In this document: positions 3,201 through 46,200 of the stretch, piece after piece
Layout: the number at the start of each line of letters is the position of its first letter
How positions within the stretch are numbered: position 1 is the first letter of the stretch
DNA from: Bispira polyomma
Lineage: Eukaryota
NCBI GenBank assembly: GCA_965649765.1
Contig: OZ287757.1
Span: 3,038,001 to 3,102,000, forward strand
DNA: 64,000 bases
Reading direction: 5' to 3'
Notes under the pieces: generated by a model
Database searches by the model: none
Told to the model about the DNA's origin: nothing
What the model saw: only the letters and a program-made list of their open reading frames with translations
Position numbers and translations under genes: made by a program

Positions 3201-6200
3201 GTATGTTTCTCCTGATTTCTATATTCTTTCCTCTACCAATAAAAATCTGTTTTCGAATTTGGATGCCTCTTGATATTTCATGTTCTGACTATACAGTATC
3301 TTATATTGTGTATTTCGGCTCACGTCGGTGCTATAAAATCCTATAGGTGATTACTTCATAAAATATAATAGAGAGGTTGGGCAACATTACGTTACGTTTC
3401 TGTCTTCTGCTAACGTAAATATAATGAGAATAACGTAATCAATTTGTGTATAAAACATCACGTCTGGACAGTGCTAAGGTAAAATATAGCATTTTGTACG
3501 CAAATGATGGTTGACTTACTGAGTGGTTTGTCTTAAAGTTTTTAGTGTACTAATTAACCATATTCTTCAAAGCTTTAGGTACATATATTTTCATGCATAT
3601 ATGTAGACTAGTTTTAAAACTTTTGTCAAATTAAATAGGATAAATATGATACACACTGACCTCAAATTTAAAGCAACCCTTCAAAACTTGACACAGAAAC
3701 GTAGTGCGCAAACTTTCTATTACCTTAGAAATGCCACCTCTTCAGAGATAAAACCTTGCATGTCTAAAATTCCATCAAGCACATTTTTATTCAATTTAAG
3801 GGTAGACTATTTCTCCTAAAGTCAAGGTATGTTAGTATAAAGCGATTTCATTGCTTAATGAGATGACAGTTCCATGTATCGTAATGTGGGTAATATACAA
3901 GGAACTCACAGGTAAACAAAATGTAATTTTATTTTCATCATATTATGAAATCTTATTTTTTTTTACCTGTTTGATTATATTTACTAAAAAAATGTAAAAT
4001 GTCAATTCTTATTGGTAAACAATAGAAATATTGTTAGTATAATTTACCAAGAGCAATATGAAACAATTTGCGTATTTGAATGCATACATATTTGTAAGGT
4101 ACTATTGAGTTTAGTCAGCTGCTATGTCCTTGCTTATGTCCGCGATATGCCACACACCGGCTATATATGCAGACAAGAGATGCCCTTGGTTACGGTTCAA
4201 GTGAAACGTCAGAGACTGTTCTATATATAAAACTTTAATATAGATGTAGTAGTTATTTGATTGACCAACTAAAATGTACTTGATTTTCAATGAACAGGTG
4301 ATACCTCACTTTCAATGATTACCTAAGATACTATTATACTTCATTTATAAAATGTAAACGGTATATTCTATTACTACTTAACATATGTGCCCCGTGAAGC
4401 AATATACATATCTTTCCACTGAAGCATTTGTTTGCAGGTGGTGTGTAATGGCTACTGGATAGAAGTGTACTTTAAAATCCAACAAATACAAAAGCGATAT
4501 AAAAGAACCAGAAAGTGTATTAATTGCTCTTTCATGACCTATAAATCTTAAAATTTTATTTTCAGTAATCACAGAGATATCAAATTTAATCAATGCAAAT
4601 CTATTCCTAAATTTACAACCTTTTATTCGGATATCTAAGCAAATATCTATACAGTTGAAAACCGTCAAAAAGCACCAAACAATAGCTTTTACCAAATGTA
4701 AAAAGGAAGAAACAGCCATTAAATGCAATGAAATATTAAGAAAACTTCCACTATAATTTTGAAAATTCTAGCAATACCAATTTATTTAATTTTTCATTAT
4801 ATGCAGTAATGTCATGGAAATATGATATTGTGGTGAGTTGCATGTTAGTGTAATTTGCTAACTGGAAGTTTATAGGAATTTTCAGAAATAAGAAAGCCAG
4901 AAGCTGTTAATTAAGTTGCATTTCAGCGTGATTTAGTTGATTGATAAAAGCTTAATTAAGTAATCAAGTTGCATATCATTTACAATTATGTTGCTTAATT
5001 ATTGCTGGAAGTTTGTCAAGTAGCAATGGAAAAGAACGAAGAAAGTTAAATGAACCAAGCAATGTTACCCTCAGGAATTGTGACATTTTCGGTAAGGTCT
5101 AAATTCGGTACAGACTTTGAAAGTTTAGTGTTGCCAAAAACAGGATGTGGTCAAGTCAGTGGGTGTCAAGTCGCAGTTGGACATCATGGCAAGCAAACTG
5201 TAAGTTACTGAGAGATCATTGGAAGTGGTAAACAAAAAGAATGAGTCTTTCGATATCTTGATGGCAGATTGTATCAAAACAATGACAACCCTGGGTTTTC
5301 AAATGGATATAAGCAATGAGGTGGCATGAAAAAAGTTTGAGGAAATAAAGGGAAAATTTCATGTAGCCATTAAACCTGTCGCTGAAAAGTGTGATGTGGT
5401 AATAAAATTGGACCAAAAGGTGGAGAAAAACCCATAAAGATGTCCACGATAAATTGGCCTGCACGGAATGACAAATTAGTCATCTTCAACAGAAAGTGCC
5501 AACTGGAGAAAAGGACTTGAGTGGCATTAAACTGCACATTCAGACAGCAGAAGTGAAAGTAGCAGGTGTACAGCAAGAAGTGAAAAACATTGCTGTCAAA
5601 ATTACACAGGTCAGTCAGGAAACTATACATCAGCTGGCTACTATGAAACAGGAAGTCAGTGTCGTTTCGTCAGACATTAGATCTACCACAAGGGAGGTTC
5701 ATCAAATAAAATCTAATGTGGTTACCAAGGTTGATACCCTGCAGAAAGACTTATGTGTTGTGAAGATATTCGTTCAGTCTGCTAAAGAGGAGACAGGCCA
5801 TATCAAATCAGAACTTTATCAGCATGTTGCATCAAGCAAATCTAACGTACACGCACTAGATGCCAGAATTCAAAGGGTAAAATTGGATGATGTTTAGAAC
5901 ACACAGAGTGATATGCAAATTAATACTCACCAAATTGTGGGACTTTGGAACCAAACAAGACAGTCAGGAGTTTACAATGGATCCAGATTTTGAGAACCTG
6001 AAGCAGAATGTGGCTGTTTTAAAACAGGATCTGAATAACTTTAGATTCCAAACATACACACCTTTAACTGATGCCGTAGCAACACAGAATCCCGAGTGTA
6101 ATTCTTTTGAAGATGATCTCAATAAATCTCTGCAGGAATTATCTGATTTGATAACTGAGTGTCATTCTGTCGTGGAACGCTACTTACTGGAGAGGGAAGC

Positions 6201-9200
6201 ACAAATCAAACTGCAAAGAGCTGAAAATGATATGGTTGCAAGAGCTTGACAGCTTGTTGAGCAGAATCAGGCATTCAAGGAGGACATCCTTCGCAAAAAG
6301 GCTGGTTTGCAATTGGGTGACAGCTGGTGTTACAAAAATGAAACATAAAAAAACATGGGGTGGACTTTAAATTACCATCAGATAGCAAAAGGACTTAAAG
6401 TGGACAAGGTATGAGCTACCAGTTTTAATGACTCAAGTAAAGCCAGTCAGTACAGCTCATCCACAGTTCAGTGTTCCGGGTAATCTGTCATCTACACCTG
6501 TAATTGAAACCATTCATAAAAAGGTATTTAATGAAAGAACAATCAATTCACGGTATGTCAGAGGGGACAGGAAATCGTAAGATGTTACAGGGGACAGGAA
6601 GTCGTATAAATCACATGCTGTAAACAGGACATCTAGCCAAAAATCATGTACTACTAAACCCGCAGTTATTAACTTGACATTTGAATTTGAGAGTGATGAT
6701 GCTCCTAGTTTAACATTGAGTGAAGCGGAGGTGTTACCAGTTGCAGCAGGCCACACTGGCACTTCACCAGTAGTTCAGAATGTGAGAAACTGAGAAAGCT
6801 TAGATGTTCCTAAACTTACTCTCTCAGAGGAGTACTGGAGAGGTTTCATTGGACAATTTTAAACATATGCCAGGGACATGCCATGGACAGAGGCCAACAA
6901 TATTGATTGCTTTTCCATGTGTCTGAGGAAAGAAGCTTCAGAGTACTTCAGCATTCTATCCGCTCAAGCAAGAGGTAGTTTTAAAGAAATCAAAAAAAAA
7001 TTGAAGCTCATTTTAAAAAAATAACTGATATTACCAGTGCCGTTAGATGGAGCTACTTTTGGAGCAAAGGGAGGATATATCATTGGAAAGGTTTTTGTCC
7101 AGACTCCAAAAGATGATCATCAGTGCATATCCAGATGCGGCTCAAAAAGAGTTATATTGTGCGATGTTCATTGAAGCTTTCTTGAATGGTTGTATTCTAT
7201 CTAAGCAGCTGGTACAAAGGCTCCTGAAGCAGGAGCAGCATATAAGAAAGGCAATATATGGTAAAAAAGCCATGGTGGTACAGCAGTTACAATTTGAGTC
7301 GGATAGTCCTGATTAGGATGTTGCTGTTAACATCAAAGCCAGACTAGTCACTCCTTTAAAGAACTTTGATGTCCAACCGAAAGTTTAATTTGCTGATCAA
7401 TTGACTCTAGAAAGTAAGGTGGATTGACCAGAGAGGACTTTAAGCGCGTGGGATGAATCGCTTACCACACAAAACTCAACAGCAGTCAAGCATCAATCAA
7501 ATTACATATTTTGAATGTGGCTATAAGGGGCACTTTGCACAGGATTATGACGGAATATAAGGGCGAATCGTGCCAGGTCTGGGCATTGTGATGGTCAATA
7601 TAACCAAGGTATTATCTACAGATTTGATGATCCTGAAGGACGTCGTAGAGAACAGCCGAGGTATTACAGCCTTAATAGGTTCACAAATAGCCCAAGCAGG
7701 GGTAGATATAGTACGGGTCAGGTTAACAAGACCGGAAGGAGTCATAATCCCAACTGGAGATCAGGGTCGCAGGAGATGTCTGGGGGCTACAGATCAAACT
7801 TTCCCAGCAATCACCGAGTAGAGGTTTCAAGAATGTGAAGGGCACACACTCTCGCAGTAGCTACTCGAGCAGCAACCCTAAAGTAATGCCTTTAATCTAG
7901 GAAAGGGGGGTGGAAATAACAGTGACTTATCCCTTTTAATCATGAACACTGTTTCGCACATACATCACGATAAGGCAGCAGAAGCAGCAGATGCAGCTGT
8001 TCTTGAGGAACCCATTGGCGTACCTGGATCCCGTAAAAAGGTCACCGAGGTGGAATCGTCAAAAGACTCACAAACTACCAAACGGGAAGTGGAGGATGTC
8101 ATAGGTTTGCCAGATGAAGCATTGGATGAAGCATTGCTTGCTACCATCGACAAGTGCTTGGCAAAATAACCAAACCACTTTCCAGTGCTGAGCCACAGGA
8201 AGATACGGATGTTGATCCGACACCCCCTACTAGCCAGGAGCCTAACCAGGCCTGTCCAGAGAAAATCGCTGTCGATTATGACCTTAAAGCAGCAGATATC
8301 CAAGCCAACAAGTTGGCCGCCATGCAGAGTTCTCAAAAATTGTTTTTTGTGGACTCACACTTCCACATCAACTGGATACAGAGGAAAACTCGACTAGAGA
8401 GACTGGATGCCATCTTGTGGAAAGGATCGATGTTCAATGTGCCTGCAGAGCTTGATGCCACCATCGCAAACTTTTGTGATGAGCTACCTACATGGGATAA
8501 AGTCTGTGTCTTGCGAAAGGACCACCGTTTGAGTTTTGCTTTTGGTGTACATTCCAAGCATACCAAATATGTAAATATAGTAAGGGTGGAGGCCATCAAG
8601 GGAAAATTCTCAAGCGTCATCCCAAGATGAAAGAGGTCATTAGAAAATTGCAACTGGACCAGATCTTGCTTGAGACTGACTCAACTAATGTGGTAGCGCC
8701 TGAACATGCTATCTGTAAATTCAACTTCCCTTTCGGCATACTATGTGTGATCAACGAGTCGCTGAAAAATCTGAGGGTGGAAGATATTATCAGAATCACC
8801 TCAGGCAATGCTTGGCAATTCTACAGGCTTTCATGATGAGGGAGAGGGAGTCATGGCGGAGAAGATTGTAGTGGTGTGGCAAGGACTTAAATTGCTATTT
8901 TATGTAAATTTAGAGGCAAAGATGAAAATATGTACTTTAGCTAAAGACAATCTTAAAGCAGTTGATTAAATTTAACGTGTTTAAATGCAACTAACTTTAA
9001 AAGGAAAATCTAATATAACCTCTGTTGCTACTGCAGTGGCAATTACTAAATGTATGTTCAGTTTGAAATCCTGACAGGTGAACCCCAAAAAGCCCTGTTT
9101 GCGGCAGTGTTTCGCCATCAGGTTTACTACCTCCATGAAGTTTTACTAACAACCGAAGTGACGACCCGGAAGCGGGGCTCTTCACATTCATATTTTAACT

Positions 9201-11769
9201 ATCAACGAGTCATTACACACAATTATACACAGAGACATATCTGGGCTGTCACCATAGTCCAGGAACAGCTATTAATACAGACAACAGTCAAGAAGACTGG
9301 TGTCCTGTACATTGTCAGAGGGTAAGTGGTAAAAGTACAATAATATACTAAATCTTACATTAATATCAATGTGTGGACAGTACATTAAGCTTGATAGAAA
9401 CCCGTTTTTAGGCATTTGCCTGAGCGGTTGTATACACAAGTTTCACTGAATGTAGCATTGAATGTAAGGTCTCTACATTAACTTGTATCTTAAAATAAAA
9501 ACGCCTTAAACTAAAATATCAATCATCAACTTAAGCTCAATGTGAGCTTATGTTCAGTTTAGCTCACAAAGCATCTTCAGATAAGATGAATTGAACAGAA
9601 AGATAACCCGAACTTTATGTAATTTAAGGTCAACCTCAAATCAAAGCGACCATGAATAATATAGTGTGATGGCCTTAGCTTATTAAGTTATGTAAATAAT
9701 GTAGCTCTTGACAAAGAAAAGCATCATTTTTCAATATATGTTATTACTTCAATAAAGGTCACCCAAGGGCACTTAAGTTCTCAACAAGATTGGCCCAGTA
9801 TAGTGAGAGCAGTCATAAAAACACCCTGTTATAGTTTGTCGACTCTTACATTCCTTTTCTAAACTTAAGCCGGTGTTGATTCGTTACCGAATATTTATAG
9901 TGACACAGAGAAGCATTAGTAGTAACAACTTTAAGTATATTTGAAGTCAGTACTGCCATTGTCTAACTGAAGACAAAGGCCTGTGGATGAGTGTCTCTAT
10001 ACTAACCTGATTTCATATTGGCAGTATGGTAGGCTGTGCAAGAAAGTTCTTAGCTTCTATATCAGATGTTTTATCCAGCGGAAATAGATACCCTTGAAAC
10101 TTGTCCAGATAGAATTTATAGATTAAAACAGACGATTACCGAGACAAAAGAGCTTCAGTAGTGATACCAAAATACTTGATAAATAAATAGTTATAAACAA
10201 AATATGGCACAAACTTGGAAATACTCAAGCGGAAACATACAGTTACTTGGGCGGAAGACATACAGTACTAATACCCGAACATGTGAAAACATTCAGGAAT
10301 GGAAGGAATAATTTTTCCATCTTTTGGCTACACCCAAAACATCCACCGTACACTGTCGGCTGTAGCAGGTTCATAAAGTTACAGACACGGTTTCACCATA
10401 CTACAACGCAATTTCCAAAATGTCTCTTACCGCCGCCACTCTATACCAGCATAATGAAAAACTCACATCAGGTTTATGTATCTGGCTATACCTGATATAA
10501 ACATGTCATTGTTTATTCAAAATGATCATGTTACCCAGTACACGACATTTGCATGTTTAATAAGGTTTTTTTCAAAGTTTTATAATCTGCATACATATTC
10601 CGATATCCTAAAACTAATGCATTTCCAAATGGTTTTCTGAAGCTTCATATTTTGATTGTATATTAAGGCATAGATGTCGTGATGTTCTAGAATACCTTGC
10701 TAATTTAGCTCAAATTACTAAAGACGAGTTTATAGTAAAACTTAAAACCTATATTTTTTTAACTGGTCTACCCCACTATTTGCCAGTTTATAGCCCCATA
10801 TCCCTCATATCAAGAGCTTTCTCAGTGACACAAATTTTCGTTTTAGGTTGAAAATTGATATCATATTTTTTTCAAAACTTGCTTACTGACCTTAGGTTGT
10901 ATGTTGGTCATGGGTTACATCCTTCCTTATGTTTTCAGACGATGCCCTTTTGATGTTGGGCTTTAAAAGATGTCTGCCACTAATATTATGCACCAATCCT
11001 TTCTACCTTTAACTTGTCTCGACTGACAGCCGATGGCATTTCTTATTCCTAGAACCTATGTAGGCCAGTAAGCAGTCAACATCATAAAAAATATAAATGT
11101 TTTTATTTTTATTCAGTTACTATCAATAAAAATTTTATTAGAAAAGCAGAATCCTGTATTTGGAAATTTTATGTGCAATGCTGATATTGAATGCTGTACG
11201 TATACTGTGGTGTGTGTTTAGTGACTCCAGCTATTTGTAAGCTATCACCTGTAAAATTCCTTCAGTTTCTGGCAATAGATGTTTTTGAGTCAAAAGGGCC
11301 AAATATCCACCATATTATATCATACACATGATATGTCTGATATGTCTTAAGGAACTGGAATAGGTGAGGGGTGAATACACCGAAATGGAATTGTGTAGTA
11401 AAACCCAGATTGCATTTGGGTGCTCAATTGGCTTAGTATACGTCACTGAAAAATTTTATCTAATATACATCATATATAATAAAGCATGTATGCGATAATT
11501 TACAGTTATGAAAAACAAATGTAAAAAATAATCCAGTATTTTTAAGAAATAGTGTAGAACTGAACTCAATGGCTTGTTCTTCATATCGGTAAACTAAAAC
11601 AAGACCGCACAATTGGACACCCCAAAAAAAAAACATACACATTTGAAATTTGACTTACCCTTGCTTTTGTGCTGAACTCGACAGCTTTGACACAAAGGTC
11701 ATCATTAATGTCACAGTCTTGTCCAGAAGCTGGGATAAATAACATCAACAGATAGAGTAATTGCTTCAT
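90..11769 (-). CDS. Gene A: secreted Spaetzle/neurotrophin-like cystine-knot precursor (3' end lies beyond the window)
   Basis: Coding exons 11659-11769 (MKQLLYLLMLFIPASGQDCDINDDLCVKAVEFSTKAR, signal-peptide-like), 986-1082 (RQCQRQYTDICRNEPLQIHKRFLARFVARQNK) and 90-264 (DKACKGEPQDKCAPKFGDSRRKRELFHKRQKRQGVPSINELDPIFKWEQYQPSRGCCVT). GT/AG junctions have compatible phases 0/1/2. Furin-type RRKR and RQKR sites. Exon-for-exon paralogue of gene B; the family call is inferred from gene B's Cys pattern. Confidence 0.8.
650..980 (+). mobile_element. SINE-like repeat
   Basis: Central CTCTCCACCCAGGTGTATAAATGGGTACC block typical of invertebrate tRNA-derived SINEs and an L2-like tail (gcgctttag...ttatataaat). 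Boundaries approximate. Confidence 0.5.
986..1082 (-). CDS. Gene A coding exon 2
   Basis: 97 nt, ttacag/gtaaac, 18/32 aa identical to the 97-nt exon at 34043-34139. Confidence 0.85.
1616..1720 (+). mobile_element. tRNA-derived SINE head
   Basis: Pol III A-box TGGCCAAGTGG and B-box GTTCGAATCC without a complete cloverleaf. Confidence 0.55.
5186..7900 (+). pseudogene. gag-like pseudogene (coiled coil, capsid-like region, degenerate CCHC knuckle)
   Basis: Heptad-rich ORF pieces 5496-6249; capsid-like W-x2-F...LRKEASEYF...EQREDISLERFLSRLQKMIISAYP...EAFLNGC (~6830-7200); ITYFECGYKGHFAQDY at 7501-7548, a Cx2Cx4Hx4C knuckle with TAT in place of TGT at both outer Cys; many stops and frameshifts. 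Confidence 0.7.
7942..8836 (+). pseudogene. TatD-like metal-dependent DNase with acidic N-terminal extension, frameshifted and internally deleted
   Basis: FVDSHFH (DxHxH), FAFGVHSKH (GxHP-like), LDQILLETDS (LLETD) and C-terminal ITSGNAWQFY in TatD order; the central GExGLD/HxR/HC motifs are missing. Confidence 0.75.
11659..11769 (-). CDS. Gene A coding exon 1 (signal peptide)
   Basis: ATG at 11769, hydrophobic core, gtaagt donor; 28/37 aa identical to 61676-61786. Confidence 0.85.
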
Positions 11770-13917
11770 ACTTAAAACTCTGTATAAATCGAGCACACAC
11801 TGTCACCACAGAATGTGTATCATTGCATTTGCATTGCCATCAAATGGATTTTCAGAATTCCCTTTTAACATTTCACAATACACTTCTTGTGAGATATTAT
11901 CCTCTACAACAACAGTGTATTGAGCTAAACATCTTTTTTTACCTTCTTTCCAAAAAAAGGACAATAGAATGTGCACAGGGAGAACAATACTGTTCGCAAG
12001 AATATATTTCATTCAAGAGACATTTCTTTGTGTGTTGTTTAGGTTTGAAACAGTTGTTGACATTTCCTATGAATGCACTGCAATTTGTTCTACTCAAGTG
12101 CCTGCTAAGTTTTTATGATAAAGTTTAACCGCGTCATTGCAACAAATGGTGGGGCTTTTCTATGTACACTTGTCTCCATCAAAACAATATTGTAGGAAAA
12201 GTTGATTTGTGCAAGAAGACATTAAAGAAGAAAACATAGACAGAGTAGATTGTTTGATGAAAGGAAAAAAAAAATCTTTATTTTAAACTTCAAAATATGT
12301 GTAGCATTGGACAGAAACCGACAAAAATGTTAAACAAATGCTGTGTATAATTTACCAATTAAATAAAAATATTTGCAAACACATCTCTTAAGACCCATGG
12401 TGAATATTTTACCTATAAATCATATTTAATCATTCAGTATAATATTGTAAAATGCAATACCATTTGAAAATCCCTATACCGTTAAACAAACTTACAATGT
12501 GCCATTCCCTTATATTTTTGTAATCCTAATAACTTAAAAACAACCTTAATGTTAAATGTTAATATTAATGTTTTTACTTCTATAGCACCACAATCGATGA
12601 CCAGGCATCCTCTGTTGCGCATAACACATTGTCTAAATAACCTTAGACAATAACACAGCATATTAGTCACCCATTTATCTGCAACCTTATGCAACTATAA
12701 GGCAAACATCAAATTGTATTAATAAAAGCCCCCTGAGGCATATTATTCATGCAACTACAAGGCAAACGTCAATTTCCCATACTGATAACCCTTTGGATCA
12801 CATTCTCCATTCACTATATACTTTAAGTATATGGCCCACAAACTGTCTAGTAAACTCTTCATCTAACTATCTATCTATTGTAAACTTTATCATCATACTT
12901 ATCATTACCAGATCAAATGTTTCTATACGAATACTGCTTTACTGTTATGTGAAGTTATGGAACTTGAAACTTATGAGGTCCTCACTCACTCTCCGGTAGC
13001 CCACACCAAGAGTGAAGGTTATGAATAAGGATCTGTCTCCACACAGTTCTGAGCTCGATCTTGTCACAATCCAACAGAATACAAAAGCTGTCCTCTTAGA
13101 CGCTGCAAACTAGATTTGATTCAGCCCGTAAACTTGACATATCTCTTATAACCGTGATGTATATATTTGACATAAATTAAGCGTAAATGGTAACAATTTG
13201 AAGCCAGTTTTTAAATGCTGCGGAAAAAGGGTGGATGAGGGCAAAATGTATACGTTTTCTTGTTGGTCCCCTTTTCAAAATGATAGAGCATGTCCTATCA
13301 CAAGGTTAAGCTTTTGGGTGGAATGCCTGTGATTGGCTGTGGTAATCCAGATATTAGTAAGGCCCCCGTTCGCTAGGGGTTAAGGTAGAATATAAAATAT
13401 ACTGGGTGTTAAAAAGAACTAGCAGACCCCTATTGGGTCGTGCTATGCATAACCTTAACGTTAGGTTAGGGCTACTAAATTTTTGATTAAAATTTTGAGT
13501 GTTGCACTGCAACTTAATGCTCAGGTCCTAATGCGATAATGTAGTGCTCAGGTCGTATTGGGATACCTGGGTACATTATGCAAAAGAGTTCATTACTGAA
13601 AACAACTTTTTTAGTTATTGCAGACATGCAATTTATTGAGTTAAGCCCGCCATCAAAAGTTACAAACTTAAATCATTAAAACAATTATTACCAAAATGGC
13701 GGCTAAGTCAGTGGTTTGCATACCTAATAAAAACACAGTATCATAAAAACATTTATTTTGCTATAGATTTCCCTGATTTTATACAAAATCAGCAGACCAG
13801 CCACATTCTAGCTAAATAAGAATAAAATCCTTAAACGGATGTGCAATTCATTCCTTAGCAGAAGTATGACGCTTGTCCATGAGTTTGTATTGCTGTAATG
13901 CATATTTGTACCCACCA

Positions 13918-14566
13918 GAAAGACAAAGCACCCTAGGTAGGAAGCACCTAAGCTATGGCTACCCTCGTCTGACCTTATAGGAGGGGCCCCAAGGTCAAAT
14001 CTGACCACATCAGATGATTTTCAGCCCATGATTACCTATAAGTTGGTTTCACATTGGAATTCTGTAGGACTAATAATAAGCGAATTATAAGCACTTTTAA
14101 ATTTGGCTATTGTCATTTGACATTAAAGGAGGGGCCCAAGGTCAAAAAACCCCTAGGACCAATAATAAGCAAGTTATAAGCATTTTTAAGTTTGGATACC
14201 TTATTTGACCTTAAATGAGGGGTCCGATGTCAAACCTGACCACATGAGAAGATTCTCAGCCCATGATTTCCTATAGGTAGGCTTCACATGCCAAACCTCT
14301 AGGTCAAATAATAAGCGAGTTATAAGCACTTTTAAGTTTCGATACCTTATTTGACCTTGAATGAGGGGCCCAAGGTCAAACCTGACCACATCAGAACATT
14401 CCAAGCCCATGATTTCCCATAAGTAGGCTTCACATGCCAAACCTCTAGGACCAATAATTACGGAGATATAGGCACTTTTGAAGTTCGTTATGTGGGGTAG
14501 TTTGGTACTTCATGGATGACCTTGAATGAAGAGCTTCAACGTCAAATGTCTGCATGCTTGTGGAGG

Positions 14567-14872: not shown

Positions 14873-16756
14873 ACTAAAACATATATATGTTACAGTAAAT
14901 GACTTTTGAAACAGATTTGCCAATATCAACTTATATTTCCCTGATAATAAATAATATTTTATAATTACATTGTTACAGAAAATATGTACAAGTATAAATG
15001 GTTGTTAAGTTCACTTTTTAATTTTTACAGGATAAACTAAAATTGCACCTGCTGTCGCATTTATTCTTAGATTTATAACATTTAAACCTATTGTTTTTGC
15101 ACTGACTTTCACCCCTTCTTCAAATTTTTAACCGTTATACTGGTTCAAGTTACTACATTTGTCATCATCATCTTAATCATCAGGATTTTTTAAATAAGTT
15201 ATCATTAATTTTACCTAACAGATGGATATAGTATAATAGATATCTAGTGATAACCATTTGAATTTAAAATCACATTGATAATTAAAGTCATTTAAAGTTT
15301 ACCTCTAATTGTTTCTTTTACTTCTACAAGCTCCAGTTGTAATAAAAAGTTCAGGAGCCATAAGTAACACATATATGGATGACCAGCGTTCAATTGTGAG
15401 TCTCCGATGGGATTTACTTCAACAAAAGCCACATTTCACAGTTTTAGGTACATCAAAGCAGGGTTAATAAAGGTAGTTTTAATCCAGGTAGTGTGGCCTT
15501 TTTAAACATGTACTTCAGTCTTTTGATGCTGTACAAGGCACAGTTTACTGTGTATTCCAATAATAAAGGATTTTGTTATAAAAAGAGTACCTTACTACTA
15601 GACTTTATTTAATTAATTTTCACAATTTTTAAAATATTTTTTTTTTAAATTAAAAGCAAATAAGGGTGTTTAATTTATATACTACTGTATAATAGATATA
15701 CCAATATTTTGACTACACTTGTGGTATGATAGACAAAAATTTACATGCAATATGCATGTGATGTAGTGTGCTTTAGAGTGACCTAAATGAAGACAGACTC
15801 ATTGTAGAACACAAATCACCAAATAATACTACATGTACATCATATACATGAGAAACACTGAATCACCAAACATTGATCTTTCGAATCTAATTGAAACACT
15901 TAAATACAATTTTAACATTGCACAAGTTTATTGAAATGATCACCAGCAATCTTGTGAAATAATGGAGAGCAAATTTCAGTAAATACGCATATTTAGTGAT
16001 TACGTATATTTACTGTTGCATAGATATTACTACAATACATGGGTATGTTGTGACTTGAAAGCGTAAAGCTTAATTTGCACTCATGTATTGTGGTGTCTGT
16101 ACCTTCCTCAGTATGGAGGTCATAATGTAACATTGTATTTCCAATCACACCCTTCGACCATTGTGGATTCATTTGGCAATATTATGTGAATATAATCACA
16201 GTTTATCAAATATTGTCCTTAGGCCTCTGCTTAGTGAAGTTGTGTGACCACCATAAATATATGTATGAAGGTAAATGTTTTTTAATAAACCATTGACCTA
16301 TTCAAAAAAATACAAATTTCACGCCATCAACATTCTCAAGCAAAACAAATTCAGGTCGGAACACAGGCAAAGTAGTTCTAATTTTTTATTATTTTTTTGA
16401 ATACAGTCTGTTACCTAATAATGTAATGTTAATGTTTTTACTTCTATAGCGCCCTAATCCATCACCAATCATCCCCTGTGGCGCACATCTCAGTCAGAAA
16501 CCAAAAATAGCAAAATAATAGTCCGATCGGAGACAATGTTTGTGCTCATAGTTCAATCAAAACCAGCAGAGAATGTTAAGGGGGCAAAGTGAGTTGATAC
16601 AGATATCTTAAGTAGGCTCGCATGTCGGATCTTAAAAAATGACTGTTTTTCGAAACAATAGACTTCTGCAGCAATGTTTTGAAATATTAGAACTTTAATA
16701 AAATACAAACATAAATCCACAAACATATATTTCATTCATCAGTAGAGTCATTTCTT

Positions 16757-27039: not shown

Positions 27040-27510
27040 ATTATGCTTTTATAGTGCCTAATCTCCCCTTTACGAAGGGCACTCAAAGACCCAACAGCAC
27101 CAAGACAGTGAATTAATTTCAATATCAAATATGCTTAACACTAAGGTGGGTATGTTTTGGTGTACAGGTGGGTTTTAAGCTTTTTTGTAAACAAGGTCAG
27201 AGAGGGGGACGCACAAATCACATCAGGAAGAGCATTCCAAACAATGGGAGCATCAAAAGTACAGCTATAACCAAACTGTTTAACTGACTTTTAAGTAAAC
27301 GGCAAAACCTTGGAACAGCACGGAAATTACCACAACTCTAAGTGAGCCTGGTATTATAAGAACTACTGTAGGAAGAAAGATATGGGGCAAAATAATTGGG
27401 AAAACCAGTGTGAAGAAACATATAAACAAGATGTTTAACAGGAAGCCAACGCAATTTAATAATTTAATGGTGTTTGACACAATTCTAGCTGCACTCTTTT
27501 GAATACATTG
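27040..27510 (-). mobile_element. L2/CR1-group LINE 3' fragment
   Basis: FDAPIVWNALPDVICASPSLTLFTKKLKTHLY on the minus strand. Confidence 0.65.
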
Positions 27511-34700: not shown

Positions 34701-37180
34701 AATTCTTTACCAAGTAATACTTATTTGCATTATATGTTTATGATACATATGTCATAGAATGACTATCACTAGAGAAACATCCACCAGTTGCAAGCCTACC
34801 AAACAGATTCACTAGTTTATTTGGGCTGCAAACTGTCTGACTACAAAATTTAAGTGCCCTTTGACATAATTGTATATCAATTGGCAGATCTGTACATATC
34901 GAGTGCAATAAGTGTTTTTTGATACAAAAGCCCAAAACGATTTGTAATTGTGCATTTGTATATTTTCGGAATTAAATTTGTTTGACATTAACAAAGCTTT
35001 CAATAAATTTGTCATTTCGCAAGAGACAGTTCATTAATTCACAGGGTAGTTGGGATCAAGGTATTTTGCTTTGCAAACCATGGACCTTATCTAACCCAGT
35101 TATAAGTTATGTACAGTTTAGGTGAAAACACTATCATTCGTAGACACTACATTAATCACTACACGAAACATATGAAACACTAAACAAAATTAGTGATGTA
35201 AAATAAAAATTGTAATTTTTCCTAATGGTGTTGTTTTTCTTTTTAACCATTGTTGTAATGTATTTTCTACCTGGCAGGTGCTTTTGTCAAAATTTAGAGG
35301 ACTCATGTCTTTCAGATTTATGTCACAAACTAAGCCCAACGGAGTGAAACGAGTGTTCCCCCAATCTAATTTTAGACTTACTCTTAAATTATATTTTGAG
35401 AATTTTTTTCTACCAATCTGGATTTAGTTTTGGTTGTATTCAACCGACCCAAAAATTTCTAAAGTATTAAGTGCTGCCTGAAGGGATGTCTGTGTTCCAT
35501 TTAGAAAAAGAGTTTTGTCATCAGCAAACTGACTATCTCTCGTGGTGTCTAGGCTTCACAGGTGTCAGTCCTGCCTCACCCTTAAGCATCTGACTTAAAG
35601 TACCAGGCAAATTTTAACAGGTAAACTGCTTATGACATCATAAGATTTCCCCCTGTTGTCAGGGGTTCAAATTGTTTATACTTAATTTCCATTGGCTGAC
35701 AGCCTGGGCTTACCCACTATTTCTTAATAATGCATCAGTTTAAAACTTGAGACTGAACTGCACAGACGTGCTACCAGTTTTATTGGAAATAAATGTTCAT
35801 TTTACAACTGTCTTTTTGTTTTTAGTTTGTTTTTAATCATTGTTTTATGTGAAACTGATCTACTACTGAACGAACTAACTGGAAGGATGGTGTGAATGGA
35901 TATATCAAAACATTGTGCTCAATACAGCTGATCTGACAACCTCATGCTTGACTTGCTCAAAAGGGCAACAGAAAAAGGGATGATCCAAATCATTTATTAA
36001 ATATAATATTGGGTTCATTACTTTCTTTCTGATCAATACTGTTGGTAGCAAGCGTGATATTGTCAAACCAGCTCCAGAGGACTGTGCTTATAATTTCAGT
36101 ATTTCAGTATAACTGGAACTAGTAACAATGCCAAAGCGTAGTAAAAAGCTGTGTCAAAAATGTATGACGAGGCATTATCCACCTACGGGTAAAAAATGTC
36201 AAGTAGAGCAGCAGATGGAGAGTTCATGAGTGGAAGAACCTGTTCAGCAGGAGACCCCTCCCGAAGACACGACCGAAGCAGGGACTTCCTCCAATGAAGA
36301 AGAGGAAAGTATGCAGTGGCAGATCCTAAAAGAACTTCAGAAGGTCAATTCAAGCCTGGTGGAGGAACGAGTGGCGGACACACGGTCAAAGAGAGGCAGA
36401 GGTCAACACAGTGAACGAGACAATGCTTAGCTAAGTAGTGGTTCTTAGAAACAATACAATAAACCAGAAAAATCAGTTCAAGAACTAAATTTCCAGATAG
36501 CGATAATGAAATGCTTTCTCATAAACTGAGTAGTAAAGACAAAAGAACAATCAAAAGTAAAAAAGTCTCAAGTGATAGTAAAACCTCCTCTGATGAGTCT
36601 GTAATACCTTCTATGTCAGTACTGAGAACATCTCAGGATATACAAAGGGAAGTCGATAGCAGATTGAGAGAGTTAGAATGTGAAGGTGCTTGTTCAGGTA
36701 AACATTTGACCTCTAAAATAAAGTTAAAAGGGGGGGAAATGTAGAAGTGATTGTCAAAAATAAGGTGACCTGGCCACATGAGTGTATCCTGGGAGGTAGT
36801 AGTAGGCAGAGAGTTGTTTATGATCAGTTATCTCTCACACAGTGAGTACAAGGGTTTTGTAGAAATATAATGGAAGAGCCTGGTAGCTCAACCAAGGAAA
36901 AAATGGTTCAGTACATGTCAGAATTAATGGAAGACGCAATAGATTTTTCTTGGCAAGGGGCTAAGGCAGCTCATGCAGTTCTGTTGTGCGAGATGGAGAG
37001 AGGTACTGTAACTTGGCAAAACACATCTCGTATTGACAGAATTCGCAGAGCCCATGCGCAAAAACACATCCCAGCTTCAGGAAAATTTAATTGGGGTAGA
37101 AGTACTGAAAACACCAGAAAACCTTGGTTCTGTAAAAATTACCAAAATGGTAGCTGCTCTCACACTAAAGATCATGAAAT

Positions 37181-37214
<34 letters not shown>

Positions 37215-40200
37215 ATGCAAAGACATATTTGTTCAATTTGTTTAGAGAGGGGAAGAGAATTAAACCATCCAGAAAAAGACTGTAACTTTGCAAAAAAGAA
37301 AAATCTGTCAAAAAACGAGCAAGCTGCTCAACTTTAGATCAAGGTGAGGGCAGCAAAAGTATAACTTGTGATCATGGTTGTAATAAAAATTTCAAGGCAA
37401 AATGTACCACCAGCAAAGTGGCTGGTGATGTGCAAGTTAATAAAAGTAAATTTGCAGGTAAATGTATGTCTGAAAACAAGGTAAATATGTTCAGGACGAG
37501 ACTAGTATATAATAGTCGTGTCAATGTGAAGCAAACAGAAGCCATGTTGGCACGTAAGTGTATACAACGTTTTAAGTTCACAAAGGTGACAGAAAAACCA
37601 ATTATGCAAACAAAAGTGTCAACAAACACTTTCTATCCCACAAAACAATTTCCCAAACATTGTGTACAGGAGATTAACCCTCACAAAGAAAGTGGTAATG
37701 GTGGGGACAATCAAGGGATTGAAGCAAGGTCCCACCACATAATTGAAAATGGCGCCAACAAAGAAGTAATTAAAGCCCAAGTGGGGGTGACAGCTAACAA
37801 TAGTGACATGAACACAACTGACACTGGCAGACAAACAAGTGGACATGTTGACGTCAATAAGGTTGAACTCACATCATTTAGCAGAAGTGACACGGCTAAT
37901 AGTCAGACGGGACAGAGCCAATTACTATTTGCCATAAACAAATACCGCTTAGATGACAAATTCATCAATTCTATTGCAAGTAGAGCCAATAGGCGTGACT
38001 TAGGTAATAGAGACTTGACACATGTACTCAGTTTCATGACTTGGCAGAAACAGTCAGAGTTTGACTTTGGCTTTATCCCGTTGTCGGACATAGCTACTGG
38101 GGGGGGGGGGGGGCGCAGAAGGGTGAATGGCCTTATAAAGTGACAGATCCTTTTCACTAGCACTCAGTAATAAAAGGCATGGGGGACTATAACTTTAAAG
38201 GCGCTCGCATACCTGTTGCCTCTCAGCTAAATGTCACAAACTGGAGGAAGTTGTTGAAAAATTATTGGGATCAGCAGTTGGTGGAACTTATCGAGTTTGG
38301 ATTTCCCCTTGATTTTAATAGGCAATGTCCATTAAGGAGGGAAGGTGAAAATCATAAGTCGGCTACCCAATACCCAAAACACATAGAAGTATATCTCAAG
38401 GAAGAGGGTGAATTTGGGACGATTTTGGGTCCATTTGAAAAACATCCAATTGAAGGTGGTTTTCCCCCTTTATGAGCAGAGAAAAATCTAATTCGGTTAA
38501 TAGAAGAGTCATAGTTGACTTGAGTTGGCCGTCTGGGGCCTCAGTGAACGCAGGTGTGGACAAAAGTCAGTCCCTAGGTGTAGAATTCAACTTAACTTTT
38601 CCAACAATCGATCACATAACTGCTGAACTCAACAAACTCGGTAGAGGTGCATTGATATACAAAAGAGATGTAAGTCGTGCGTTCAGACACATAAAAATAG
38701 ACCCCCATGACTATGACGTATTAGGCTTGCATTGGCAGGGTGCATATGTAGACACATGTCTACCATTTGGAAATAGACACGGTAGCCAAATTTTTCAGAG
38801 ATTAAGTGACGCCGTGCATTATATTATGTGTAACCAAGGGTAGAGTGTAGTAAACTACATCAACGATTTTATCGGATACGGTACGCCTTCTGTAGTGCAC
38901 AAATTTTATGACTGCTTAACTGAAACTCTCCAAGACTTAGGTCTAACCATCAGTGCAAAAAAGCTGATTACTCCAGCAACACAGGCGGTTTGTCTGGGAG
39001 TCCTCATAGACACAGTTAAGGCTACAATTTCAATACCTCAAGACAAACTAATCACAATTCAAGACACAGTCACAAAATGGCTCACAAAAGACACCTGTAC
39101 AAAATGTCAATTGCAGTCATTACTTGGACTTTTGTTGTATGTGCATAAATGCGTAAAACCTGCCAGAATATTTCTTAACAGAATGCTAGAGTTACTAAGG
39201 GGTGCACATGCCACAAATAGCATAAAAATAAGCAATGGCTTTCACAGAGACTTGAGATGGATCAATAAGTTTCTCCCACAGTATAATGGTATCTCCATGT
39301 ATGATCATAGGGCAGTAGACTTTGTGTTAGAATTGGATGCATGTCTTACAGGGCTGGGAGGTGTATGGAGAAATTGGGTATATCACCTGCAGATTCCCAG
39401 AGGTTATATGAGCCTCATTATTGTACACCTAGAAATGGTGAATGTTTTGTTAGCAGCTAGATTGTTTCAAAGGGAGTGGGCTGGCAGAAAAGTCTTAATA
39501 AAATGTGACAACCAGGCAGTGGTATGGGCACTAAAATTGGGCAAAGCAAGGGACCCCTTTCTGGCAGCGTGTGCTAGAAATATCTGGTACACGGCTGCAG
39601 TAGCAGACATAGAATTCCAATACTTCCACATTTTGGGAAAACAGCTGAACAGAACAGAACAGCTGATCTGCTATCAAGATGGCAGAATACCACTGAAAAC
39701 TATCAGGAACTTTGTACCTATGTTAAAAAGCCTGCCTGGTTGTCGACCTCAATAGAAATGTTAACACTTGATAGCGAATTGTAATAATTGAATAAAAACA
39801 GTATACTGTACTTTGTTATAGGACACAGGCTCCTTGGGAAGCTGGGTTCACAAGCAAATTCCAGATTTAAGGCGGCATTCAGGCCTAAGACACTGAGCAC
39901 CTACACCTAACAGTTCAGGATATTTGTAGCCTTTTGTGTATACGTCAAAGTACAGTTGCAGCAAGTATCAGTTACATGTGTAATGTCTTTCCTAGAGTTT
40001 TTAATGTTCAACAAAGTTTCTAGTCAAATGATGGCTAATTACATTTCAGCAATCAAAGCTAACTTTAACATTTTGGGGCTCTGTGTCTCCCCCCTCAAAA
40101 AAAAAAAAAAAAAAAGCAAAAAATTAAGTATTACTTGAAAGCCATAAAAATAAATAGACCTTTGTTGGTTACGACTCACAACATCATGGATATATCAGCA

Positions 40201-43200
40201 TTAACCAATATAATAAAGCAGTGTGTGTTAATGAATCTACCCCCTGTGTTTAAAGCAGTATTTTTAACTGCCTTTTTTGGATTTTTACGCATATCAAACA
40301 TCGCTCCTCACACAAATTCTGCATTTGATCCCACCAGACATCTGACACCTGCTGATGTCTTTTACACAGAAGATTCTGTAAAAATTCTCATTAAATGTAC
40401 TAAAACCCTGCAAACTGGGGATAATGTCCATATATTAACTTTACCAAAACTATCCACACCTCTGCTGTGTCCATATATGGCACTTCAAAAGATGTTGAAG
40501 TCGGATAACCCACATAGGCTAAGTCCTTTGTTTCAGTATAAAAGGCAAGTACTAACTGACACAAGGGTACATAAGGTGTTGTCTGCAATAAATATTCATT
40601 TAGGCTTAGCCCCTAATCATTACACATTTCACGCCTTCCGACGTTCAGGTGCTACGTTTGCATATAATGCAAATATCCCTATACAGCAAATTCAGCAGCA
40701 TGGCACCTGGACGTCGGACTGCGTCTGAAGGTATATACATGGTGATGTAAATACAAGTGAAACAGTAGCTAGATCACTACGAAATACAATAGATAAGATG
40801 TTATAAATGCCCTACTAGTTGGGCTTGAGGGTTTTTATTATTGTATAATACTCTGTTTACGTTAAATTTGTCTTTTTAGTTGATGTATCACACATCTATA
40901 GTCATGGTGACTCTTACAGGTCACGAACCTGAAATGTTAAAAACCATAGTATAAAACTTAAGGTCACCTTATAGGGTGACGATTGGAAAAAATCACTTGT
41001 AAAAAAGGTTAATTTAAGGTCACCTTAACAGGATAACTTAAACTAAATTTAAGGTCACCTTAGTGGGACCCAGTAAATGTAATAAACCCTTTGGGTAAGG
41101 TCACCTTAGAGTGCCCGTATAGTAAATGTAAGGTCACCATAGGTTGGTGATCTGTGATAACTTAATGTCTGTATAATCTGTATAATCGTGAGTACCTGTG
41201 AATATATTGTAGTATTAGAGAATATATATATATATATTAATAAATCAGTATCCGCAGAGCATTCTTTCACTTACCTTGTTCTCCTGGTGGGGTGTGGACT
41301 GATTTTAATTTCTGCTTCATGATAGGATATTCCTGTCATATTGCTATCACTATTAAGTAAAAGTCTTAAAATCTATGCTCAAAGGATAAAGCGGTAAGGG
41401 GACAACAGATCTCTTGACGGCATCCTCATCCAACTGAGAAAAATTCAGACAATCGACCACATTGGGTTGTAGCTGCCTTTATTTTAGAACAATTTTACCC
41501 AGTTAATAATACTCTTTCCAAATTTAAAGTACTCCAACACCTTTTTGATAAAGCTCCGACATATACTGTCAAAAGCTTTTTCGAAATCGATCAGCATTAA
41601 TAGTCCTTCAAAATTGTTTGCTTCAGCCAAATTTATAACATCGTAAACAAGCCTTATGCTGCCCCCAATAAATCTACCCTGTATAAACCCATTATGACTT
41701 TCCAAAATTATCCTAGGCAGTAAGAGTTTATCCTATTGGCTATGGCTGCTGAAGTAATTTTGTATACAACTGAAAGCATTGATAGAGGTCTCCAATTTTT
41801 TATATTGATGTGGCTTATCACCTTTAAAAAACAAGTGATAATACAGGTGCATATAGTTTCAGACATAAGGCCTATATATGAACTTAAATCTAAACCAAAA
41901 AAATTTAACAAATTTGGCAGGAAAACCATCTATGTCAGGTGTTTTAATATGTTTCATGTGCTTTAGTGCCTTACTTATCTCGCTTGTTGTAATTTGCCCT
42001 TCCAAATTTTCTTATCCTATTTCTTTTAGGGTTTTAAAATTTAGGTTTGGTACAAATTTTAAGTCACGATTCTCTGTTTGTCTTTCAGCAAAGAGTTTGG
42101 CGTAGAAATCATGTACACATTTAAATATTTCATCCTGATCTGTTGATACTGAGCTGTCATTAATTGATATCTTTTTAATGGTTTTTTCCATGTAATAGAA
42201 TTTTCCTAATTATTGTTATTATTATATTTTTTTCACATGCTTTATTGATGCTAGGCATCTTTTGAAGCGCAACAGCAGAATCATTGGTCCAATCAATAAG
42301 TCCATGGACATTGCAAAGTCGTAAGTGGGAGCGTGTACGAGGAAAACTAAGGTGGGTAGGCAAGATTAAAAAGACAGGTTTTAAACTTTTTCCTAAAACC
42401 GATAAGTGTGTCAACTGATCTGAGGTCGACTGGGAGACTGTTCCATAACCGTGGAGCTGCAGTGGAGAATGCTCTGAATCCCGCCTTTCTGATTGGTCTG
42501 ACCGAAGTGACGGAGAATTACAAAAATATTTGGTCGGCTTTTCACCCTGATTTACCTATTCAGCATTTGATCTGATTAATTGACCTTGGAGCTCCGGGTT
42601 GCGTATTTTTTTTTGTATTATGGATACAACACCTTAAAAAATTGTTTGTAACTGTATAGTGTATAAAATAGCAGATTTGAATAAAATCTATCCTTTTTTA
42701 TATTTGTTTGCAAGTTTTCGTCCCAGGATGCATATTGAAGTGAGTATATGCATCCATTTACTTTAAACTTTTTTTCCTTGTGTTAGGGACAACCTAAACA
42801 AGTTTGTAGCTGGTTCCTTATTTTCGAGAGGAACTCAAACCATATGTTGCTCATAGCAATCCAGATATGTGCCACTTCATTCTGATCTTGCTAAAGATTA
42901 CTATTACAATTATAGGCAAAGTTCATAATTAAATTTAAGTATTTATTATTCATAAGTCAAGTTATAATTAGTTGTACAAATGTTTTTGTACAGGTATGGT
43001 TGCAACCACTTGGTGCGATCATAAGCCCATCTATCTCCTCTCGAGTGCACACATTCCAGAAATGGAAAACCTCCAAATAAATAAAAAAGATGGCAGGGGA
43101 AAAACCGTCATGATCAATATAAGTACATGGGAGGTGTGGACATTAATGACTGCTTTACTGCTTTGGACAAAAGCAGAAAGCAGTACAAGTGGTACTCCAG

Positions 43201-46200
43201 ATTATTCCGGAAATGCATTATGTGGTCCTTGTACAATGCATATGTTATTGAGGGACATTTTATAGATCAACATCCTCAAAAGAAGAGAAGGCTTGATTTT
43301 AGATCATTTGCTATGGATGTGGCACATCAGCTGGTCAATGGATTTTCATCCAGAAAAAAAAGTCTGGTCGACCAAGTCTTACAGAGCACCCCAGAAAGCG
43401 TATTGTGATCAATGACAATGACCATTTTTCTATTGTGGGTGAAGGCACAAACCATAGGTGTGTGATGTGTTCTGAAAAACAGTGTCCAAATCCAGAGGAA
43501 TCTAGTCTAGTCAGTCCAAGACCACGTTCAAGTGTTCCAGCCAGGATGGCCAGCTTTACCTGTGCATTAGGTAAAAATTCTACATGATGGAGAGACTGGC
43601 ATCCAAAGATCAAACATTAGTATTAAATTAGTGGTGTGCATAGCAAGTCCACCCCAGGGGACTGCTAGATCAGTCCAACCTCCTTTTTCTATCACACTAC
43701 CTTAATCCCTAGCGAATGCAATAGCATTATCCAACTTTCTGTCCATCTGGGCCTTGTCCAATCACAGCATTAGCTATTAGTGACCCCTAAGCTAGGATAG
43801 CTATCCTCCATATTGAATTTGTGTTTTCACCTGTGAACAGGATATTTAGAAAATTGAAATTTTAACCACGTATTTACACTGAATTGGTTTTATTTATATT
43901 TTACTTCTTTTTATTAACTGACGTGGTACTGGAACTAGTGATTGTTGTGTGAAATGGGGAAAACAAAAGCAACTCCTGTGTTAAGCAGCAAGAAATGGAC
44001 CACAAAGACAACTTCAACTAGTACAGCCAAGAAAAGGGGTACTGGTCAGGTAACTACTACTAATACTCACGATCAATCAGAAATACATAGAACAGTCATT
44101 GCCGACACTGCGTGTCCTCTTATTGATTCTCAGTTATTGACCAGTTCAAATGGATCATCTAGCCAAGCCGGGCTCTCATCTCAGGCCGTACCCCAGTCAC
44201 AAGTCGAGTCACAAAGCATGTCCGAGGTTCTTTCCATCCTGCATGGTCTGGAGACCTCCAACGCTAACATAACCCGGCGATTGCAACTCGTAGAGGACAA
44301 ACAGACAGTTACACCCGCTAATTCTCCATTACACACCATGAGGGATGGTACGGTGGTCCAACAGAGACACGAGGGTTATTCGTTACCTCTTCCCCCTCCC
44401 AGGTACAACGGGGTCGGGCAGCCGCTGGCTCAACCTATGATGCAACCACCAACAGGTCAGGGTTACAACACAGATGGTGTCCCCAGTCTCGATGCATTAA
44501 GATCTTTTCCAAACGTGCAGGCGGCCGTTACCAGGCAGCTGGCTGACTATGAAGCCTTGGCCCAAAGGGGTCTAGTCCAGGGTAAGCACTCAATCAGGCA
44601 GAAGTCTGGTCGTTATAACTCCACAGATATTACTTTAGCTGATCCCCAACTCAGATGGTCTAACGAAGGTTGGGGTGGGGGATCGACTCGTCGAAGGCCA
44701 GTCTTTGATGACCTCACGTTGCCACAGTGGGCGGCTGGCCAGCTGGCCAACTCGCTACAAGTAAGTGATCCGGCAACAATGAAAGCTATGGTGAACCAAG
44801 TGGTACACGCACTACGGGATGCAGCCACACTTCCGTGGCCTGCTGTCAGGACAGCCTGGGCTGTCAGTATGCATGAGATCGAGGAAGGCAGGCTGTCCTG
44901 GCAGGACAACACTCAGTGGGCACTGAATCGCATCAGTGCCTCCCAGATGGCTATGGTAGGCAACAATGGCAGTAACTTGGCTAACGGGGCTTCTTCAGAT
45001 AGTAAATCCATCTGTAAGCTGTTTAATAATGGCAAGTGTACTCACAAGGCGGATCATGGCAATTATCGTCATGTATGTTGGTATTGTAATAAGACATTAG
45101 GAAAGGACGCATCGCTCCCAGAGTTCAAATGCTTTAAAGCGAATGTAAGTAAACAGCCAGACAAACAACAAGGTAACATCTAGGGCCACGATTCACAACC
45201 AGTTGGACGAACATTAGGTAGTGATAAGGGTAATTCAATGATGAACGGTAACAGTAAATTTGTAAAAGAGTTTAATATAAAGGACAAAAACAGTGAATTA
45301 GGTTATTGCGACAGAAGCATGTCTGAAATTAATACAATTGTGCAATTGCATTTCAAATGGGAGCAGTCACTATGCTAATTCACCAGCTTGGAACAAAGAG
45401 GCACACACGTGTCAGGTATCAGTTACCAATTGGAAAACTTTTTGTGGGGAAATTCAAAATTTGGCCCCAATTGTTTACATTAGGGATAGGGATGGAAAAT
45501 TCTCAGGTTATTTCCACATGTTTTATGACGTGACTGCTGCCAAGTGTGTATATGCTCGTGTTGAATTTCCACCTAGCCAAAACCTTTGAATTATTCAAAC
45601 CTTTCAAACCATAATCCAGGTTCAGGCTGTTTCTTTAAATACTACCAGTAATACTAATGTGGAAACTCATCACCAGGCTGTGATCAAGCAAGCTGCTGAT
45701 ACATTTTATTATTTCGAAAGAGATAATGCCTGTTTCAAGCAGTTGGGTTTTGATTATACTGAATACATGACCAGGTTAGTAGATGCACTTATTAGTGACA
45801 GTGAAGATGAAACACCTGACAATTGCCATAAGTCAGACAATTGTGCAGACTTGTCAAATGTAAGTACACAAAAACCAAGTGAGACTGTAAACAGTCTGAT
45901 TTGTGATAAAATATACATGAACTCGTCGAGCAATGAATTCACTCAAATGGTTGATAGTGTTCGAGCAAACAAGGATTTATACAAAGAAATTAAGGACTTT
46001 AATGACCCCGAGAAAACCATGGGTTTCTTGGCACTTTCCTCAACAGCATTCACATTCATAGGTCCTGACAAACCTGTTAAGAGAATTGAAACAGTAGAAG
46101 ACATGCTGCAAGTGGCTTCTGTTATCAGAGACACTGCACTTCCCAATTATAGACAAGCAAGGGTTCCCCTGGTGTCAGGACTTAATCCAGATGCATGGGA

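Follow-up and report, generated by a model that had tools for sequence, protein, structure and literature searches.

A degenerate gag–TatD locus in Bispira polyomma as a probable relic of a Ty3/gypsy-type retrotransposon lineage with a TatD nuclease in its third reading frame

LTR retrotransposons with enzymatic third genes

Retrotransposons with long terminal repeats (LTRs) are typically described as gag-pol elements that at times also carry an envelope (env) gene and, to our knowledge, enzymatic third genes are rare among them and documented mainly in rotifers. In retroviruses and LTR retrotransposons that encode a dUTPase, an enzyme of nucleic-acid metabolism has been added, presumably protecting or processing the cDNA. 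The dUTPase, however, is usually a domain of pol and acts on the nucleotide pool, whereas the TatD protein considered here is a nuclease with an open reading frame (ORF) of its own. TatD enzymes are 3'-5' exonucleases. The present analysis concerns a stretch of 64,000 nucleotides from Bispira polyomma (hereafter the window; contig OZ287757.1, positions 3,038,001 to 3,102,000 of the forward strand), in which a first-pass annotation had pointed to gypsy-like gag remnants coupled to a TatD nuclease and had proposed a retrotransposon lineage that carries TatD as an accessory gene.

The closest published analogue comes from bdelloid rotifers, whose LTR retrotransposons Juno and Vesta have an enzymatic third ORF (ORF3) that encodes a DEDDy 3'-5' exonuclease or a GDSL esterase (Rodriguez, Kenefick and Arkhipova 2017, PMC5408684). 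The rotifer ORF3 has kept its catalytic residues, and different element lineages share ORF3 modules or exchange them (PMC5408684); dUTPase lineages of rotifers are also mentioned in that study (PMC5408684). As in Juno and Vesta, the elements described below have a nuclease instead of an envelope gene as the third ORF after pol, together with module exchange. In contrast, the rotifer enzyme is a DnaQ-like DEDDy exonuclease while that of the TatD elements is a TIM-barrel metal hydrolase, the element lineage and the hosts are different, and the TatD ORF3 adds an arginine/serine-rich (RS-rich) N-terminus and a zinc-finger-like helical domain. Within the TatD family, TATDN2 cuts RNA in R-loops (PMC10711561). 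A full-text search over about 8.4 million papers, with the repeat catalogues Repbase and Dfam outside its scope, found no paper that ties TatD to LTR retrotransposons.

Remnants of gag and TatD in the window

The segment at 5204-8850 on the + strand of the window is very probably an old, inactive copy, with internal deletions, of an LTR retrotransposon lineage of the Ty3/gypsy type that has a TatD ORF3. Complete members of this lineage carry an unusually long gag (helix-hairpin-helix, coiled coil, capsid and CCHC knuckle), a pol with protease, reverse transcriptase, RNase H and integrase (PR-RT-RH-INT), and a third ORF in the env position whose C-terminal end is a complete metal-dependent nuclease domain of the TatD family. 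Of these, gag and the TatD end of ORF3 would remain in the window copy, and pol, about 120 TatD codons, recognisable LTRs and any N-terminal domain of ORF3 would be gone. The window sequence is free of any N. From about 5050 to 8840 its + strand is a series of stop-free segments interrupted by several stops, and the frame changes at least five times; the following features are found there.

5204..6349, + strand: decayed N-terminal and coiled-coil region of gag, as stop-free segments in three frames with stops
6611..7340, + strand: capsid-like part of gag in two frames, matched by the gag of related loci L002 and L007
7507..7548, + strand: remnant of a CCHC zinc knuckle; the CX2CX4HX4C spacing is exact, and Tyr has replaced the first and last Cys
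7560..8234, + strand: linker from the gag knuckle to TatD, with no detectable relatives
8235..8627, + strand: N-terminal part of TatD with DSHFH and GVHSKH, followed by an in-frame stop at 8628-8630
8600..8612, + strand: junction of the internal TatD deletion, with about 120 codons gone and a frame change
8609..8839, + strand: C-terminal part of TatD with RHP..., LLETDS and ITSGNA, in a frame other than that of the N-terminal part
8840..8850, + strand: purine run of 11 nt, a candidate polypurine tract, directly after the stop; no LTR follows

In L007 and L002, the counterparts of the capsid region, the knuckle and the two TatD parts follow one another in the order seen in the window, and the nearest relative of both the coiled-coil part and the TatD is L001, at 42-53% amino acid identity (L001 to L010 denote related loci in public sequence data). 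In a maximum-likelihood tree of TatD sequences, the window and L001 are sisters with support of 100/99. The element-linked TatDs all fall into a single clade (100/100), set apart by a branch of 1.74 from the nine other TatDs compared, among which TATDN2 was not included. For this tree, the gene fragments of the window, of L001 and of L004 were joined with an X at each break, no real letters being added, and the in-frame stops of L001 and L005 were set to X.

The segments at 5204-6349 are heptad-rich and match only coiled-coil families, and these weakly. Within this region, 5881-6246 aligns with L001 6367-6668 (42-53% amino acid identity, E=2.5e-9); the region as a whole shares short patches of 67-85% identity with L001 and has a weak match to amino acids 379-470 of the L007 gag. 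The true start of gag probably lies further upstream, at about 4850-5050, where homology gives no signal. In the capsid-like part, amino acids 96-211 of the L002 gag ORF match 6611-6982 (E=1e-12), and amino acids 645-705 and 730-840 of the L007 gag match 6800-6982 and 7053-7340, respectively (summed E=1e-22); the counterpart of this region in L007 gives weak Retrotrans_gag and PNMA matches. The window knuckle weakly matches the zinc-knuckle region of L002, and a gag with both capsid and CCHC knuckle, as is characteristic of Ty3/gypsy elements, is accordingly represented in the window. A 27-bp tandem duplication (1.9 copies) occupies 6555-6606, in the gag linker of the relic.

The N-terminal part of the window TatD opens with about 30 residues of the element-specific stretch that precedes the nuclease domain; it matches the ORF3 profile at positions 403-514 (E=2e-20) and L001 at 42-48% amino acid identity. 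The C-terminal part is coding from 8609 to 8833 and ends in a double stop, TGA TGA, at 8834-8839. It matches the ORF3 profile with E=2e-13, L001 at 50% amino acid identity and the Pfam family TatD_DNase (PF01026) with E=0.0018 over profile positions 187-252 of 253, where its 18.1 bits lie below the 27-bit cut-off. Membership of the TatD family is thus seen in the window through the ORF3 profile, and in the relatives through direct matches down to E=1e-40. Positions 515-641 of the ORF3 profile are absent, and about 357 nt of L001 are without counterpart in the window. The deleted codons held GE.G.D, IHCRD and HCFNG, three of the five metal-ligand motifs (Glu and two His), so that of the full set (HxH, Glu, His, His, Asp) the window keeps just DSHFH and ETD.

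The gag remnants and the ordered TatD motifs DSHFH, GVHSKH, LLETDS and ITSGNA are therefore real, on the + strand and where the first-pass annotation had placed them, and their matches lie well past the level of chance. The single intronless TatD ORF of that annotation, however, resolves into an N-terminal part in one frame with an in-frame stop and a C-terminal part in another, with some 120 codons missing between them. A purine run does abut the stop, as had been described, its 11 nt following the double stop, but it is no more than a candidate for the polypurine tract; in the intact relatives L007 and L002, about 390-540 nt separate the ORF3 stop from the polypurine tract. The reported absence of pol held when the window was compared with the proteins of related elements, which revealed no pol remnant between gag and TatD, and the description of the copy as a pol-less derivative stands: gag and TatD match the elements in order, and its TatD groups with theirs.

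The only matches in the window that resemble reverse transcriptase (RT) lie in other elements, at about 39 kb and 46-52 kb, and the order PR-RT-RH-INT that marks Ty3/gypsy elements is not found. Since the copy is without pol, it is the remnant of a Ty3/gypsy element and not a complete member. Searches of 7560-8234 by tblastn and with the ORF3 profile gave no match to the gag C-terminus of L007, L002 or L001, to pol or to the ORF3 N-domain; the junction of the deletion that took pol (and any N-terminal ORF3 domain) must lie in this interval. No direct repeat flanking 4500-9500 was found by self-blastn, a Smith-Waterman comparison of the two flanks yields at best a score that shuffled sequence also reaches, DNA matches to the LTRs and 3' untranslated region (UTR) of L007 are absent from the window, and no flanking LTRs with TG...CA-type ends were found there. 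The window copy is a dead relic without expected function, unable to encode an active protein.

Elements with a TatD ORF3

A retrotransposon lineage with TatD as an extra gene does exist. The intact gag-pol-TatD copy that the first-pass annotation had proposed to look for was found in ENA assembly ERZ22147071 (L007), as a 12.2-kb Ty3/gypsy element with three open ORFs in the order LTR, gag, pol, TatD ORF3, LTR. Its LTRs (827-1030 and 12857-13060) are 204 bp each, 100% identical and have TG...CA-type ends; TTAT stands on both flanks (823-826 and 13061-13064), and a primer binding site (PBS) starting with TGG lies just past the 5' LTR. The gag of 1051 amino acids comprises an N-terminal helix-hairpin-helix, a long helical middle with coiled coil and a zf-CCHC match at amino acids 887-902 (E=3e-7), while the pol of 1339 amino acids contains, in order, protease, RVT_1, RT_RNaseH, Integrase_H2C2 and rve. 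ORF3 is separate and 821 amino acids long, and its last 277 residues match TatD_DNase with E=1e-40 over all 253 profile positions. The 3' UTR (12467-12856; 390 nt) has short repeats and a purine tract that abuts the 3' LTR. Several units of about 60 nt with a conserved AACATTGTTCTA-like core are seen in this 3' UTR, as well as in those of L002 (12220-12769) and L008 (12612-13139).

Besides L007, TatD stands between LTR pairs in four loci from two assemblies (L002, L008, L009 and L006), and gag accompanies it in the first three of these. In assembly ERZ22147071, gag and TatD lie between LTRs that are 95-96% identical in L002 and 96.5% identical in L008. L002 likewise shows a TGG-starting PBS next to the LTR and a purine tract ahead of the 3' LTR; TTAT occurs both at 496-499 and downstream of the 3' LTR. 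TTAT therefore flanks two independent insertions (L007 and L002), which suggests a 4-bp duplication and a preference for AT-rich targets. Membership of the Troyka superfamily was ruled out, as Troyka has CG...CG ends and 3-bp duplications whereas the TatD elements have TG...CA-type ends. L004 shows pol and then TatD, and the short contigs L003, L005 and L010, from three further datasets, show the ORF3 N-domain followed by TatD. At 90% identity, ORF3 clusters hold 70, 33 and 9 member sequences, so that the TatD-ORF3 family is abundant in the ERZ22147071 genome. A homologue search with relative P0018 returned mostly generic TatDs, and one with the N-terminal part of the window TatD found nothing among proteins of 87-276 amino acids. 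A metagenome scan with the ORF3 alignment gave almost solely bacterial TatD/YcfH loci at 24-29% identity, L010 being the sole locus with an ORF3 N-domain and TatD; bacterial contigs from gut metagenomes were left out.

Derivatives that have lost other parts but kept TatD are common among these relatives. In L001 everything from capsid to RT is missing, and the coiled-coil region of gag is followed by RNase H, integrase and finally TatD. L009 (assembly ERZ25069580) has lost RT and RNase H; LTRs of 93% identity stand on either side of its gag, protease, integrase and TatD. L006 (9503-12790) is a 3.3-kb derivative that consists of LTR, PBS, an open TatD ORF3 of 709 amino acids, 3' UTR and LTR, its LTRs being 98% identical; the junction lies right behind the PBS and about 100 nt inside ORF3. 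An origin of L006 as a reverse-transcribed spliced ORF3 mRNA was ruled out, as this junction is not at the predicted acceptor. Such derivatives lend some weight to the possibility that the window copy belonged to a non-autonomous gag-plus-TatD subfamily, which would have lost pol before insertion and been copied in trans by full-length relatives. There is, however, one copy from the window genome and no second identical gag-TatD junction has been seen, and because the second deletion lies inside TatD, decay in place is evident for the window copy; we consider the non-autonomous origin possible but on the whole doubtful.

All TatD catalytic motifs are kept in the open copies of ORF3, down to 31-41% identity with the L007 ORF3, and all five are present in the relatives P0036, P0035, P0038, P0018, P0020 and P0021. 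Upstream of TatD, ORF3 has the RS-rich basic N-terminus and a conserved zinc-finger-like helical domain, marked by the pattern C-x4-C...H-x4-H and by a PPN motif that does not vary; the structure model of this domain (predicted local distance difference test, pLDDT, 56) is helical only and too poor to interpret. The TatD domain of relative P0036 (505-821; not the window sequence) was modelled with a pLDDT of 92 as a TIM barrel. The top 16 PDB matches of this model are TatD-family structures with target-normalised TM-scores of 0.72-0.85 (0.56 for 3e2v) and E down to 1e-16, including YcfH (1yix, 0.85), TATDN3 (2y1h, 0.78) and TATDN1 (2xio, 0.72), although the element TatDs share only 16-26% sequence identity with solved TatDs. 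The element proteins thus resemble the cellular TatD family (bacterial YcfH and TatD, human TATDN1, TATDN2 and TATDN3) in their Pfam match (E=1e-40), five catalytic motifs and modelled fold. They differ in that a mobile element encodes them together with fused N-terminal domains of its own, and in that they form a separate clade in the tree, from which TATDN2 was absent. The capture of TatD by the element, as initially proposed, is plausible.

The ratio of nonsynonymous to synonymous substitution rates (dN/dS), a comparison already proposed at first pass, is 0.19 for ORF3 (L002 versus L006, 613 codons) and 0.175 for the RT-RNase H region; this codon comparison shows ORF3 to be under purifying selection. 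Between L007 and L002, DNA identity is 92% over the stretch that starts at the LTR and ends shortly beyond the pol stop, and it drops to 66-69% in ORF3, where synonymous sites are saturated. This fall in identity past pol shows that lineages have exchanged the ORF3 cassette. The leader contains a candidate splice donor, GTAAGT, and a pyrimidine-rich tract ending in CAG precedes the ORF3 ATG by 10-12 nt in two ORF3 lineages that are 54% identical. This candidate donor and acceptor suggest an env-like expression of ORF3, which would proceed from a spliced subgenomic RNA.

The arrangement recalls retroviruses and the insect errantiviruses (env-carrying Ty3/gypsy elements), which likewise have three ORFs and carry the extra gene downstream of integrase, ahead of the 3' LTR, and whose env is expressed from a spliced subgenomic mRNA, as the candidate leader donor and the candidate acceptor just before the ATG suggest for ORF3. 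The TatD ORF3, in contrast, is a predicted soluble nuclease and not a membrane fusion glycoprotein, and nothing hints at infectivity.

Alternative origins, neighbouring features and significance

Some observations weigh against reading the window copy as a relic of the TatD-ORF3 lineage. Its identity to the elements is low (30-43% at the amino acid level for L007 and 42-51% for L001). LTRs, a PBS and a target-site duplication around the copy were searched for and none was found, so that it is the gene order which argues for a single insertion. The family may also already be catalogued in Repbase or Dfam. The lack of LTRs and the absence of detectable homology at 7560-8234 would also fit gag and TatD fragments that are independent of each other and adjacent by chance or through nested insertion. 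This explanation is nevertheless improbable, as strand and order are those of five related elements, both halves have their best relative in one locus (L001), and the region has a similar composition throughout.

TatD is a cellular gene family and the window piece is intronless and decayed, as would be expected if it were the processed pseudogene of a host TATDN gene beside an unrelated gag relic. The evidence speaks strongly against such an origin, which we regard as very unlikely. Against the PDB, the N-terminal part has no match at E<=10 and the C-terminal part at best one of E=0.013, to TATDN3, while neither part matches TATDN1; the same two parts match the ORF3 profile at E=2e-20 and 2e-13, and the match covers the element-specific stretch before the domain. 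An exhaustive HMMER search with the N-terminal part against 1.84 billion representative proteins gave 19 matches, mostly fragments, and all of those examined with their context were of the element type, none being identifiable as cellular. The TatD tree, which the first-pass annotation had called for, joins the window with L001 and the other element TatDs, and by tree and PDB search a cellular TATDN is not its closest kin (TATDN2 sequences not included). These tree and PDB results, in which TATDN2 is unsampled, exclude host TATDN1 and TATDN3 as sources of a recent processed pseudogene. Equally remote is a former domesticated host gene, gag fused to TatD and now a pseudogene: gag and TatD are close together without pol, and vertebrates have domesticated Metaviridae capsid genes, but at least five frame changes, several stops, a deleted catalytic core and relatives that are LTR-flanked mobile elements all argue against it.

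The relic may be part of a wider picture, to which we give about an even chance. In this picture, the elements would form an undescribed Ty3/gypsy branch with TatD in the env slot that is still active in at least one eukaryotic genome (identical LTRs, three open ORFs and more than 100 ORF3 variants); the nuclease would be selected, traded as a cassette and act on RNA:DNA or cDNA intermediates of the element itself or blunt their sensing by the host, and the window would hold an ancient relic in a second, related host. The window also contains a tandem repeat of about 145-bp units at 13970-14491 and other short repeats at 15916-16027 and 27141-27430. The short window repeats match the flanks of L007, L002 and L008 at 70-86%, which hints that the host of the window and that of ERZ22147071 are related.

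Other features of the window lie apart from the relic. A young tandem retroelement at 43635-54207 is built as a 225-bp repeat, a 5.1-kb body, repeat, body and repeat, with units that are 99.3% identical and outer repeats that are 100% identical; its ORFs include RVT_1 and RNase H (RVT_3), and no integrase is found in it by Pfam. An older retroelement at 36870-40728 is DIRS/Ngaro-like by weak matches, namely a Phage_integrase (tyrosine recombinase) match at 40135-40728 (E=1.8e-5, below the curated cut-off) and an RT-like match at about 39321-39539 (E=0.02). The Rfam search matched nothing in the window but two canonical histone 3' stem-loops, both above threshold, at 58595-58641 (+) and 59596-59641 (-); neither has a histone ORF beside it, and they are not the arms of an inverted repeat. 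A pair of dispersed repeats of about 450 bp, at 11598-12048 and 61624-62053, shares 75% identity.

In the intact TatD elements, the nuclease would act on replication intermediates, by trimming 3' ends, by removing RNA from RNA:DNA hybrids or by clearing damaged or surplus cDNA. The processing or clearing of reverse-transcription intermediates is the most likely role because TatD enzymes are 3'-5' exonucleases and TATDN2 cuts the RNA of R-loops; alternatively, the nuclease may dampen host sensing of surplus cDNA. Its role may be analogous to that of the exonuclease and dUTPase genes of other retroelements.

A selected and exchangeable TatD ORF3 would be a new class of accessory function in LTR retrotransposons. 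It opens the question of what benefit a 3'-5' exonuclease or endonuclease, from a family that acts on R-loop RNA, brings to elements that replicate by reverse transcription, and the further question of why unrelated retroelements should have picked up exonucleases repeatedly. For genome annotation, the finding implies that TatD-like matches in such genomes may be the ORF3s of retroelements and not host TATDN genes.

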